From Geosiphon pyriformis uo1 (lineage: Eukaryota > Fungi > Glomeromycota): a DNA stretch of 64,000 nucleotides. Positions 36,843 through 40,442 of the stretch are shown piece after piece (positions within the stretch are counted from its first letter, which is position 1; the number at the start of each line of letters is the position of its first letter). The notes under the pieces were generated by a model, which searched no databases, had not been told where the DNA came from, and saw only the letters and a list, made by a program, of their open reading frames with translations. Location of the stretch: NCBI GenBank assembly GCA_016748015.1, contig JAAOMT010000630.1:263254-327253 (forward strand), in the 5' to 3' direction. Made by a program: the position numbers and the translations under genes.

Positions 36843-37510
36843 TCTTTTTAAATGGCAGAAATGTCAATATTTTCAGCTTCACAAAAAATCATTTAATCAC
36901 AAGTGGGAGATTCAAATCGGTTAGAGTATGTTTTTCTCTAGACTGTAATATTTATCAAACCTTGAGCCGCCCATTTCTTTCCTATTATATATTTTCTGGA
37001 TCGCAAAATTTCCCCATTTTATAGATTATGGACATTTTGGAATATTTCGAACCTTTTGCTTTTCAAAAAGTTTTCCTTCCCAAGTTGTTAACGTCAAAGG
37101 CGTCCATTTTCCCTAACATTTATTTATGTTTAGTTTTCAACTATTTTTCTAGGATTATTATCTTTGTATATTTCTTTTTTGTCTTTAGAAGCAGGAATTT
37201 TTATTTCAAAGAACCCTTCATCTTCGCCAATCGATCCTGACACCACACCATTTATTCATCATCTTTTTTAAATGCATATTGCACCTCTAAGGCTCATAGA
37301 ATGGTTGATGATGTTGGGTGGTACAAAAGAAAATTACGAGCTTAATATTTTCAAGAGTAATTAATCACTATATCTAGTTCATCGTTTTTATAAACCAAAA
37401 TTTAGCCATTCAATTTTGTTTAATGCCAGTTAGTAAAATGAATTAGCCACTTGTATGTATAACAGAATTTGTTACTCTAAACCAAAGTGAAATGTAAACG
37501 TCACTCAGTT

Positions 37511-37830
37511 ATGACATTTGTGAAAATATTTCAGACCGCCATAAATAGTCAACACCTTACCAGAAAGGTCCGTGTCTCTAACGCCAAGCAGAAAGAGGAT
37601 CTCGAACAAAAGTGGCTCCCCTCTTCTAATTTCTAACACACAAACTTCTCAGCAATAATATCAGTTCGTGCTCTGTTCTAATTCAGGTAGATGGAGGACT
37701 ATTTCGCACCTCTTGCTGAGTGCGCCTCGGCGGAGTGAGTGCGTTTCAGCGAATTAGCTGAATCGGGGAACTGCCTTAACTTCGCGCTGAGGCAACAATC
37801 ACCTGGTCACTTGCTGCCCGCGGGTCGGGG
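37511..37830 (+). pseudogene. tnpA: IS607-type TnpA (serine recombinase) remnant
   Basis: RVSNAKQKEDLEQ at 37571-37609 matches the serine-recombinase catalytic motif (Y-x-RVSS-x-x-QK-x-DLERQ). Weaker frameshifted traces follow (VA.L, GLF, VRFSELAE, QSP). Confidence 0.65.
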
Positions 37831-37948
37831 AAGGTGGGCAAGCGGAGGCACTCCATCCACTTACCGCTAATATTTTGCTTTTGTGTTTTGTCGTTTCTCT
37901 GTTAAAACGTATTACTTACCACGATGTATTCTCATTATTATTAAGGAG

Positions 37949-38819
37949 GATGTCAAATCAGTTAGGTCTCTGGCCGTTTTGAAACCCTCAGAAGCAGCTA
38001 TGGATGGGCTTGACGAAATTTGCCTTTAATACCGTAGTCAGGTGGAACAAAAGGCTTTGTGTTATGTTGAAGCAAAATGGCATTACGAAAAAGAAATGGG
38101 TGAAGCTTATGATAGTTTAACAAAAACGTCTTCTTTTTGATAATCTTTTGGCTATCTGGGGGAACAAATGTTTTGTAAAGCTGTTATCCATTTTGGCATG
38201 CTCTTACGAGGTTGTTTAGTTTCGGCTCCTGCTAATATTACTGATAAAAGCATCGATCAGATGCTGACAGCACGAGACGAAATTGTTAAACATAATACAT
38301 AGGGACAACAAGGCGCGGCAACACATCATATTTCTTTCTTCACTTGGTATTCCCCTTTAATAGGGTGATTAAAACGGGGTCGATGAGATCGGAAGAATTG
38401 TTCCTCCATCCAAGTATATGGATAACCTGATTTCGAAAAAGTTAAACTAGCTTTCTGCTCAAAACTTAAAAAACACAAGATCCAGGGATTTGACAAAGCA
38501 GTCTCGCACATGCGACGAAGGATTATGCGTCTGCAGTGAAATCCACAGGGTGACGATTGTATTCTTCACTCGCGGGTTGGACCCAATCGTCATCCTGCCG
38601 TTTGAAGTGTCAGACATGAGAAATCGTAAGGGGAAAATACTCTCCTTGGATACATTAACGTGTTGTCATCCAAAATGAGGCTTATAAATTAAAGGTTTGT
38701 AGTTGGTGTGGTAGCATACAAAGCGGGGTTTTAACGGACAGAGATGAAAATGGTGCTCGGGGATCCTTCTCCAGGCATTGCTTGAGGGACATGCAGGAAA
38801 TAGTAATCTTACTAAGTAA
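37949..38819 (+). pseudogene. tnpB: Fanzor2/TnpB (IS200/IS605/IS607 OrfB-like) RNA-guided nuclease pseudogene
   Basis: Collinear motifs across frameshifts: QLWMGLTKFAFNTVVRW (37995-38045), SFFTWYSP (38333-38356), MDNLISKK, DKAVSHMRRRIMRLQ-SEIHRVTIVFFTRGLDPIVILPFEVSDM (RuvC-II Glu at 38604), VVIQNEAYKLKVCSWCGSIQ (38662-38721), DRDENGARG-ILLQALLEG (RuvC-III Asp at 38743). Confidence 0.88.
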
Positions 38820-40442
38820 TTCCTAATAATACCCACTATTTATATGTTACAATTCATCCGCAATTCTGTAAACTTGAAACTCAAATTGATTAACAAGCTA
38901 AAATGAAGAAAATATCTTCGCAAAACATTGATTTGTTTAAAATTATAATTTCATTTACCGTATAATAAAAATTGATTTTATCATAAATTGTCTGAATTTT
39001 AATTTATTTTTAGGTAAAAGGGGTATTTTGGCGAAATTAATAAATTTGTTCAGGGTTGTGATAAAAATGCTCTACTTTCACGTGTCTTATTCTCTCACGC
39101 GAATTTATTTCGCTAACTTTGCCACAATTTACCTTATTTATCAAAGTGATTTTTTGATTAAAAATATTACCGAGTAAAGTGCTAAAGATAATTAAATTAA
39201 TTAACAAATTTTTGATCATTTGTAATTATATTATTTATTTTATTTATAATTATTGTTAGATTAATTCAATATTACTCAAAAAAATTATGATATTAAAAAA
39301 ACCATTTATATATAAATGATCATAGATTAAATAATTTAAGATTCGTTCATCAGACCATTACGCATTAATTTAAATAAACATTAAAATCTATTTGTAAATT
39401 TTTTTTCTTAATTAAATTTCAAATAATATTTTTAAAAAATATTTCCAAACAATATTTTCAAATTGTTAAATTATTTTTAAAATCAATGATTAATTATTTT
39501 ATTTCAAAAAAAAATTTTTTTTTATTTATATACTTTTAATAAATTATAATTAAAATTTGTAAAATAATTAGAAAAAAATTTTTTTTTTTTTAAAAAAAAC
39601 CCCATTAATTTGATTAAATTATTAAGAAATTATTTTTAAATCATTTAACTAATTGTTTAATCACGTAAAAAAATAATATTGCTTTCATTCATTCATTCAT
39701 TAATTATTATCATAATGCTTTCTAAAGAATAACTTTTAATAAAATGACCAATTTTTTTTTAATCAAAAATAGTTTTGATTAAAAAGAGACAGAATTTATA
39801 AAATTGCCAAAAGTTAATTATAATTTCAAAATTTAAACATTTAACATTCGAAAGAATTCGTTCAAGTTTAATGTAAACATTTTAATAAAAATTATTGTGT
39901 AGTTGATTAAAATTAATATATATTCATTTATATAAAACTCTGGGAGATTTTTTTTTTCTAAGTTATGAATGAGTTTACTAAATTTATATTTCAATCTCAC
40001 TTTTCATGAAACGTCAGTTGTCCTATTGTGATAGCATATTAAACATTAGAATAATTTTTTTCACCCAAAAAAAAAAAAAAACAGTATTCGCTCCTTCTTA
40101 AAAGAAAATTTTGTTGATTTACAAATTTTACATTTAGATGGCCTCGATTTGCCATTTTCATTTGTAACTACTCAGAGAATGGTTTACAAAGTTGTAAAAT
40201 CCCAAGTTTTCGCTTTTATCAAAAATTTCCCGGAACTACCTTTCGCTTGAATAGTATTTTCTCAAATATTCCGAAATGAGAGATCATATTTAATTATAAT
40301 TTAAGAATTTATTAGCGAATGAATCTTTGAGACACGATTTCCAATAAATCCATTTACCATCCTAAAATAATGATCCCAAAGATTAGATTTTTTTAAAAAA
40401 ACGGAACCAAATTTTTATAAAAAAAGTTAAAATACCTAGAGA

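Follow-up and report, generated by a model that had tools for sequence, protein, structure and literature searches.

Fanzor2 proteins in IS607-type elements were described in 2013, with yeasts among the hosts (Bao and Jurka, PMC3627910), Fanzor2 has since been 'found broadly in fungi' (Saito et al., 2023, PMC10432273), and genomes with up to 122 copies have been reported (Jiang et al., 2023, PMC10530073). The characterised Fanzor2 enzymes (ApmFz2, which is mimivirus L79, PDB 9b0l; NlovFz2; MmeFz2) have the same domain order as the Geosiphon pyriformis family described here, with HTH_OrfB_IS605, a RuvC domain carrying DPG and an alternative Glu, a C4 zinc ribbon and DRD(E/V)NGA in RuvC-III, and in both an IS607 serine recombinase lies upstream. 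The characterised loci, however, are intact elements that occur in small numbers (3 to 24 copies in the cases cited; PMC10530073), whereas the Geosiphon family is decayed and numbers hundreds of copies. The published fingerprints of Fanzor and of the cyanobacterial 'pro-Fanzor' proteins are a DPG in RuvC-I and a Glu located six residues before the first CxxC (Yoon et al., 2023, PMC10711439). Pro-Fanzor (PMC10711439) resembles the Geosiphon family in its DPG, its alternative Glu and its IS607 TnpA partner, but it is prokaryotic and intact, whereas the copy studied here sits in a large intron-bearing genome with AT-rich intergenic DNA; the bacterial loci that we recovered with the same profile as the viral ones (25-48% identity) also show a long +1 overlap of tnpA and nuclease. 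In Helicobacter pylori IS607 and in the IS607-like sequences of eukaryotes, as in our family, a serine recombinase is followed by an overlapping TnpB, and no terminal inverted repeats are reported (PMC3673617). Occurrences of IS607-like sequences in fungi were already reported in that survey, which saw no sign that IS607 had transposed in eukaryotes, whereas in Geosiphon the many dispersed copies that share their ends point to past multiplication inside the genome.

The window that we analysed (the whole 64,000-nucleotide stretch of G. pyriformis DNA) holds at 37560-38860 on the + strand, possibly starting from near 37380, what is very probably one decayed copy of an IS607-type Fanzor2 transposon. 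The original prediction, made from the sequence alone, had proposed a dead Fanzor2/TnpB relic at 37949-38819; the relic is indeed there, but the element around it is longer and includes a tnpA remnant and a right end. A three-frame translation of 37900-38850 returned all of the peptides quoted in that prediction, on the + strand, in three frames and in the order given, with stops between them (Table 1). A family DNA profile of 2131 positions was built from six sister elements of the Geosiphon genome, each cut at its two ends, and gave only three matches in the window, all collinear (37560-37657, 37983-38336 and 38338-38860), of which the last covered nodes 1475-2131 with an E-value of 2e-75. 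Likewise, when 3625 stop-free translations of at least 30 amino acids from sister loci were run against the whole window, the matches were almost confined to 37556-38860, and one such piece (from L021) was 65% identical over 55 amino acids to the 38338..38657 region (E 5e-20). In addition, two intact Fanzor2-like proteins from metagenome or run assemblies unrelated to the Geosiphon assembly, P0005 (647 amino acids) and P0151 (648 amino acids), were aligned to the window by tblastn. Both matched collinearly across three frames: 37983..38336 matched P0005 residues 213-333 (E 3.5e-9) and P0151 residues 185-315 (E 9.4e-8), 38338..38657 matched P0005 residues 468-553 (E 3.6e-13), and 38659..38823 was 51% identical to P0005 residues 589-639, while 37959-38138 matched the HTH_OrfB_IS605 residues of both proteins. 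Significant and collinear matches to TnpB/Fanzor proteins, the outcome that the prediction had asked for, were thus obtained.

The zinc-ribbon and HTH profiles, proposed for the same purpose, were passed by sister copies and failed by the window copy. The only Pfam match among seven window pieces was to PF07282, at 14.8 bits (E 0.032), and this falls below the cut-off because half of the zinc ribbon has been deleted. Given that the window copy alone lies under every Pfam cut-off, its identity rests on homology to better copies.

Table 1. Parts of the decayed element in the window and the stop-free peptides read within it (positions in the 64-kb window).
Feature	Position	Strand	Evidence and remarks
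Probable left-end region	37380..37559	+	boundary uncertain; weak MAFFT alignment to left-end block of sister copies; without significance in the family DNA profile; holds the first GT..AG gap, 37453-37534
tnpA remnant	37560..37657	+	family profile E 2.4e-10, nodes 146-254; blastn against sister loci 72-80% identity
Segment unalignable with the family	37658..37982	.	325 bases; holds the second GT..AG gap, 37834-37945
Fanzor2 N-terminal core	37983..38336	+	HTH_OrfB_IS605 region (WMGLTKFAFNTVVRW) and helical REC part; two frames with stops; profile E 1.6e-66, nodes 645-1051
Peptide WMGLTKFAFNTVVRW	38001-38045	+	stop-free translation
Peptide APANIT..KHN	38225-38296	+	stop-free translation
Peptide SFFTWYSP	38333-38356	+	stop-free translation
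Deletion junction	38336..38338	+	profile node 1051 to 1475 across two bases; P0005 residue 333 to 455
Post-RuvC-I strand (FTWYSP) and long helices (MDNLISKK, MRRRIMRLQ, SEIHR..ILPFEVSDMRNRK)	38338..38657	+	frameshifted; internal deletions of 27 and 45 bases
Peptide MDNLISKK	38418-38441	+	stop-free translation
Peptide MRRRIMRLQ	38510-38536	+	stop-free translation
Peptide SEIHR..RNRK	38535-38630	+	stop-free translation
C-terminal nuclease part	38659..38823	+	alternative RuvC-II Glu and first CxxC (QNEAYKLKVCSWCG); RuvC-III DRDENGARG; reading-frame end; second CxxC deleted
Peptide VVIQNEAYKLKVCSWCG..DRDENGARG	38662-38760	+	stop-free translation
Peptide ILLQALLEG	38763-38789	+	stop-free translation
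3' non-coding right end	38824..38860	+	ends ..TTACAATTCATCCG at 38860, the last profile node (2131)

The anatomy of the copy is that of an element which has lost large blocks from its interior. Its left end was placed near 37380-37400 from a poor alignment to the left-end block of the sister copies, and the GC content of the stretch assigned to it rises to 46% against 30% in the flanks. The catalytic-serine motif of an IS607-type serine recombinase, RVSNAKQKEDLEQK, can be read at 37571-37612. The segment that follows occupies the place expected for the recombinase core and the Fanzor2 N-terminal extension, and it found no match in any sister locus at the DNA or protein level. A separate candidate reading, in which 37668-37973 would be a diverged recombinase core, was rejected, since no sister copy aligns there and the sole other genomic copy of the segment (G000:C683:514611-514903, opposite strand, 70% identity) has no Fanzor parts nearby. 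At the deletion junction about 423 profile positions are missing, which corresponds to about 120 codons (P0005 residues 334-454) and takes away part of WED together with the RuvC-I DPG, where sister copies read HAVSIDPGIRTPFTWYSP. Further downstream, the family profile alignment of 38338-38860 shows internal deletions of 27, 45, 36 and 22 bases. The second CxxC was lost within the 36-base gap (10-18 residues relative to intact homologs), so that the copy keeps E-x6-CSWC and DRDENG without the second cysteine pair. The loss of the RuvC-I DPG, of wedge sequence and of the second CxxC had been foreseen, and the jumps in the profile and in P0005 as well as the 36-base gap bear this out. The right end is sharp: similarity among 16 aligned copies stops directly after a conserved ..TTACAATCCATCCG or ..TATTGATATGTTACAATCCATCCG. 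In live relatives, by analogy, this would be the place where the omega-RNA scaffold ends, as we presume. A search of Rfam returned two sub-threshold chance matches, both outside the relic, and no family that matched the conserved right end.

The relic stretch is represented in three runs of one organism from two studies, and contigs of the runs X2 and X3 match 37425..38910 on the + strand with 0 mismatches while skipping 37453-37534 (82 nucleotides, GTATGT..CAG) and 37834-37945 (GT..AG, the position after a +3 shift of the aligned joint). Coverage of the upstream gene ends near 37340-37386, and past 38910 no contig extends into the AT-rich DNA, a picture that resembles transcript assemblies. 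In the joined (spliced) model the longest ORF starting with ATG has 44 amino acids. Together, these data suggest that a spliced non-coding RNA is most likely made from the relic, where the kind of run (RNA or DNA) is a guess and splicing is read from the GT..AG ends and the contig shapes. It could be argued from the exact contigs of two studies, with their two canonical GT..AG gaps, and from the one paralogous copy of the unaligned insert found elsewhere, that the relic now serves, with a function of its own, as a spliced long non-coding RNA gene or within a host transcript. We consider such a takeover improbable: the joined model holds no ORF above 44 amino acids, the run kinds are only guessed, and dead transposon copies are commonly transcribed and spliced without this implying any function.

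The family of this dead transposon copy can be identified from the sister copies. Read in order, the better-preserved ones carry ..HAVSIDPGIRTPFTWYSPTKG.. (RuvC-I), the helices ..MDNLISKK.. and ..LQNEIHRK.., and then ..VIIQNEAYTSKTCSWCGNIQ..CRNC..DRDENGA. For PF07282 (TnpB zinc ribbon; cut-off 26.3) they scored 52-73 bits (maximum 72.9) and intact homologs 40-75 bits; for PF12323 (HTH_OrfB_IS605; cut-off 21) a sister piece, L043:1134-1466, scored 23.6 bits and intact homologs 19-40 bits. The RuvC-I pattern [SA][IVL]DPG[IV][RH]T was present in six sister pieces and in the family alignment, and DPG was invariant in the intact homologs. The pattern E-x6-CxxC-x(9-20)-CxxC-x(3-9)-D was found in 7 sister pieces, with the second Cys of the first pair changed to Ser in L002, and the strict published pattern of the alternative Glu was matched by 27 of the 54 long database homologs. 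This pattern also bears on the catalytic residue of RuvC-II, which the original prediction had placed in LPFEVSD. The Glu of ..ILPFEVSDM.. lies at a position that varies among relatives (D, G, N, K, E), and going by the published Fanzor fingerprint the catalytic Glu of the window copy is the one in NEAYKLKVC (QNEAYKLKVCSWC), at about 38677-38679, which this copy retains. A six-frame scan of the genome with PF01385 (OrfB_IS605) gave no match, because the middle region of the family is too diverged for that model.

Comparison with solved structures gave the same assignment. The best match of the sister C-terminal pieces was the mimivirus L79 Fanzor2, PDB 9b0l (E 2.4e-9 and 3.9e-11), followed at lower rank by Cas12f-type proteins (about 1e-7) and ISDra2 TnpB (0.25), with no chain named Fanzor1 among the PDB matches at E up to 10; a PDB search with a 170-amino-acid RuvC-I piece of a sister copy yielded chance coiled-coil matches only. 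Among intact proteins the closest relatives were P0005 and P0151, which are 52-54% identical to the sister piece L002 used as query.

The nuclease relics are also linked to an IS607 recombinase. In sister copies tnpA pieces lie directly upstream of the nuclease relics on the same strand, and six-frame matches to PF00239 upstream of the relics reached 40 and 32 bits. Against the PDB, IS607-family TnpA proteins were the best matches of these pieces (ISC1926 TnpA, 6dgc, E 5.9e-7; also 6dgb and IS1535), and more than 20 sister loci contain the motif Y(A)RVSSxKQKEDLERQK. In sister copies the recombinase and nuclease readings can both still be made out in one stretch of DNA, each in a frame of its own; therefore, the upstream TnpA remnant and the nuclease relic belong to one element.

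Whether the relic should instead be called a Fanzor1 or an ordinary IS605-type TnpB was considered against these results, given that the zinc ribbon and RuvC motifs are common to all TnpB/Fanzor groups, which PF07282 does not separate, and that Fanzor1 likewise has a DPG and an alternative Glu (PMC10711439). We regard this assignment as very unlikely. An IS607-type serine recombinase directly upstream is the association of Fanzor2 and pro-Fanzor, while Fanzor1 sits in eukaryotic transposons (PMC3627910, PMC10530073, PMC10711439); a sister copy has HTH_OrfB_IS605; the best PDB match is a Fanzor2 and no Fanzor1 chain appeared; and the N-terminal motif P[YF]W..LW.P..SWF is that of NlovFz2 and Torulaspora Fz2. 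Where Fanzor1 would bring a Mariner, Helitron, hAT or similar carrier, no IS607 TnpA and large insertions, we found an IS607 tnpA and a compact core. The association with IS607, which defines Fanzor2 in PMC3627910 and PMC10530073, is present in the sister copies, and for this reason, together with the fingerprints and the best PDB match, the label Fanzor2 appears right on sequence grounds, subject to a labelled tree.

The size of the assembly (128 Mb), the AT-rich intergenic flanks of the window copy and the GT..AG gaps in the contigs over it fit a eukaryote. The assembly contains many relatives of the window copy. A six-frame scan with PF07282 gave 124 matches, about 70 of them above the curated cut-off, and a search with the 170-amino-acid sister piece gave more than 150 core matches. 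A DNA search with 37400-39000 of the window returned 62 further places at 68-81% identity, many of which lie a few hundred bases from PF07282 matches on the same strand. The copies are dispersed over very many contigs and have conserved left and right ends in common, beyond which the flanks are unrelated. These data support the conclusion that the genome hosted a large family of IS607/Fanzor2 elements of which hundreds of decayed copies are left, and the earlier claim that a nuclease family had been hosted here holds on the PF07282 and core matches as well as on 685 first-look candidates. The further expectation, that the genome may still host a nuclease and that intact sister copies would turn up, was not borne out. 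The best 77 of the 685 candidates were scored with a full-length profile of 544 positions made from ten intact outside homologs, and none of these 77 was intact, all being broken by stops or frameshifts; the longest continuous stretch among them covered about 280 of the 544 positions and contained several stops. No long ORF was present in any sister locus examined, and the searches with the 170-amino-acid sister piece and with a piece of a four-copy subfamily found interrupted copies only. Decay has gone least far in this second subfamily of four copies (L001, L003 and relatives): the last 200 codons of L001 contain just one in-frame stop, although L001 is broken further upstream. A protein of Gigaspora margarita, CAG8578432.1 (Saito et al., Supplementary Table 1, PMC10432273), is like the minor subfamily L001/L003 in ..IDPGIRT.., ..LDDLISRT..APYKKRN..MKRAQ.R.R.RIQNL.. 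and IIIPPFN.., and is nearer to it than to the subfamily of the window copy, as judged by eye from the printed table, where its row carries a dash and not a Fanzor1 or Fanzor2 label.

Giant viruses and cyanobacteria show an enrichment of Fanzor2 and IS607 (PMC10530073, PMC10711439), and close relatives of our family were found in viral and bacterial contigs, so that the copies might be debris of integrated giant-virus DNA or of bacterial (endosymbiont or contaminant) DNA and not a nuclear transposon family. There is little to recommend this reading, about as little as for the Fanzor1 assignment, because the copies occur on very many contigs and each stops at the same conserved left and right ends before unrelated flanks begin. 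The window copy itself lies between eukaryote-type genes and intergenic DNA of 15-19% GC and is covered by contigs with GT..AG gaps, and the 68-81% pairwise identity with independent lesions fits old bursts of transposition. The notion that reading across frames produced the whole resemblance by chance, for which one could cite the lack of a significant Pfam match to the window pieces alone, is refuted by collinear matches with E-values down to 2e-75 that are confined to one place in 64 kb.

The elements related to this family show an arrangement of their two genes that deserves separate description. In four intact elements from outside Geosiphon (L066, L067, L069 and L070) a complete tnpA overlaps the Fanzor2 ORF by 584-650 nucleotides, and the nuclease is always in the +1 frame. 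Overlapping ORFs of IS607 have been stated before (Gilbert and Cordaux, 2013, PMC3673617, citing Kersulyte, 2000); neither the length of this overlap nor any connection with the Fanzor2 N-terminus was described in the Fanzor literature that we searched. What the shared stretch encodes in the nuclease frame is the N-terminal extension, with the motif P[YF]W..LW.P ... SWF, which is also present in the published NlovFz2 and Torulaspora Fz2 sequences. When tnpA was recoded synonymously or its codons were shuffled, the +1 frame stayed open in only 0.01-2% of trials per element. Viral and bacterial loci were fetched with the same profile, and all 95 that keep both ORFs (45 from viral contigs, 50 from bacterial genomes) have a +1 overlap of 317-809 nucleotides; counted over bacterial, viral and eukaryotic loci, the overlap falls within 317-809 nucleotides in every one of the 100 loci with both ORFs preserved. 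Its presence in bacterial and viral loci makes the overlap an old trait of this IS607 clade. The idea that a long overlap is an adaptation specific to eukaryotes was rejected, as the 50 bacterial and 45 viral-contig loci have the same overlap and frame.

A stronger claim would be that the first 120-215 codons of the nuclease, which lie in +1 over the catalytic domain of the recombinase, are an overprinted coding layer under selection throughout the clade, from pro-Fanzor through viral to eukaryotic Fanzor2. We offer this tentatively and think it rather doubtful as it stands. Were it true, the 'disordered N-terminal extension' of Fanzor2 would be overprinted, and the evolution and expression of the two proteins would be tied together; in eukaryotes, one capped mRNA could then serve the translation of both.

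Returning to the decayed IS607-type Fanzor2 transposon in the window, its history may be pictured as follows. In intact form the element is about 2.0-2.2 kb long and has two overlapping genes, one for a serine-recombinase TnpA and the other, in the +1 frame, for a Fanzor2 nuclease of about 580-650 amino acids. This nuclease starts with an N-terminal extension, which is followed by HTH_OrfB_IS605, WED/REC, a split RuvC that contains DPG and the alternative Glu, and a zinc ribbon; the conserved right end closes the element. By analogy with characterised TnpB and Fanzor2 systems, TnpA would move the double-stranded element, and the nuclease, with an RNA from the right end plus flanking DNA, would cut the emptied donor site so that the element might be restored by repair. 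In the Geosiphon genome the family multiplied to hundreds of copies and then decayed. The window copy no longer has the recombinase core, about 120 codons (RuvC-I among them) or half of the zinc ribbon, and it carries many stops and frameshifts, so that it can make neither protein.

In sum, the relic belongs, as a dead copy, to a nuclease family that had been catalogued in fungi before, and it provides no usable enzyme. The prediction that it is a dead Fanzor2/TnpB copy is upheld by the sister profile, by the collinear intact homologs and by the IS607 tnpA link. For working enzymes one should look to the intact relatives L066, L067, L069 and L070 and not to the Geosiphon genome. The defined left and right ends would help to annotate other relics of the family. 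The dispersed, decayed copies with their shared ends are evidence that a transposon of prokaryotic type, with a serine recombinase, multiplied inside a eukaryotic genome, which goes beyond what the earlier survey (PMC3673617) had shown.

In every one of the 100 loci that retain both ORFs (five from metagenome, sequencing-run or genome assemblies (L066-L071), 45 from viral contigs and 50 bacterial), the Fanzor2/TnpB ORF overlapped tnpA, by 317-809 nt, and lay in the +1 frame relative to it. The chance of a stop-free +1 frame over tnpA, estimated by synonymous recoding or codon shuffling of tnpA, was low (P of 0.0001-0.02 per element), and the segment overlapping tnpA encodes an N-terminal extension of the nuclease. 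P0036, an intact homolog of 611 aa, retains the N-terminal motif ..DPFWSPVAQHLSDTLWCP.. despite loss of the tnpA frame, a persistence that hints that the extension may be under selection for its own sake.

Coordinates of the relic, its relatives and neighboring features
Feature	Location	Strand
Weak U4 snRNA and C/D snoRNA model matches	window 37065-37143 and 37208-37270	minus
Exact contigs over the relic	window 37425-38910	
GT..AG gaps in these contigs	window 37453-37534 and 37834-37945	
325-base segment	window 37658-37982	
Other copy of the segment (L231/L233)	G000:C683:514611-514903	opposite
Sister element with definable ends (L046, G000:C783)	L046:2468-4369	
Second subfamily, L001	G000:C701:384126-387323	
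Second subfamily, L003	C404	
Second subfamily, L058	C701:315k	
Second subfamily, L004	C588	
Overlapping tnpA and Fanzor2/TnpB ORFs	L066:2078-4148; L067:1-1999; L069:280-2167; L070:1416-3291; also among loci L072-L230	
P0036	L068:172-2007	

The relic in the window was covered by contigs of runs X2 and X3, which come from two studies, with two canonical GT..AG gaps and an end about 30-50 bases past the right end of the element. With the run kinds (RNA or DNA) being guessed, these contigs make it probable that the dead transposon copy is transcribed as a spliced non-coding RNA. The relic also contains a relatively GC- and CpG-rich segment of 325 bases that is absent from all sister copies; its only other copy in the genome is 70% identical and located away from any Fanzor remains. 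Within the 3′ part of the upstream gene, Rfam gave weak matches to U4 snRNA (16.6 bits against a gathering score of 46) and a C/D snoRNA model (20 bits against 60); both were well under threshold and probably reflect chance.

A second subfamily, comprising only four copies with 80-83% protein identity among them, carries ..SEAYTSKTCSQCGWIN..NIDRDVNGARGIF.. and is far less decayed than the subfamily of the window, its C-terminal half being interrupted by single in-frame stops. Compared by eye, the Gigaspora margarita entry in the table of Saito et al. resembles this second subfamily.

L046 and five further sister elements allowed the two termini of the element family to be delimited: the left one lies near ..TTAATAATGCCTATCAATAAAA.., and ..TATTGATATGTTACAATCCATCCG forms the right one. 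Sister copies keeping both ends measured 1422-1902 bp, compared with about 2.1 kb in intact outside relatives. The defined ends are helpful for annotating the many other relics in the genome.
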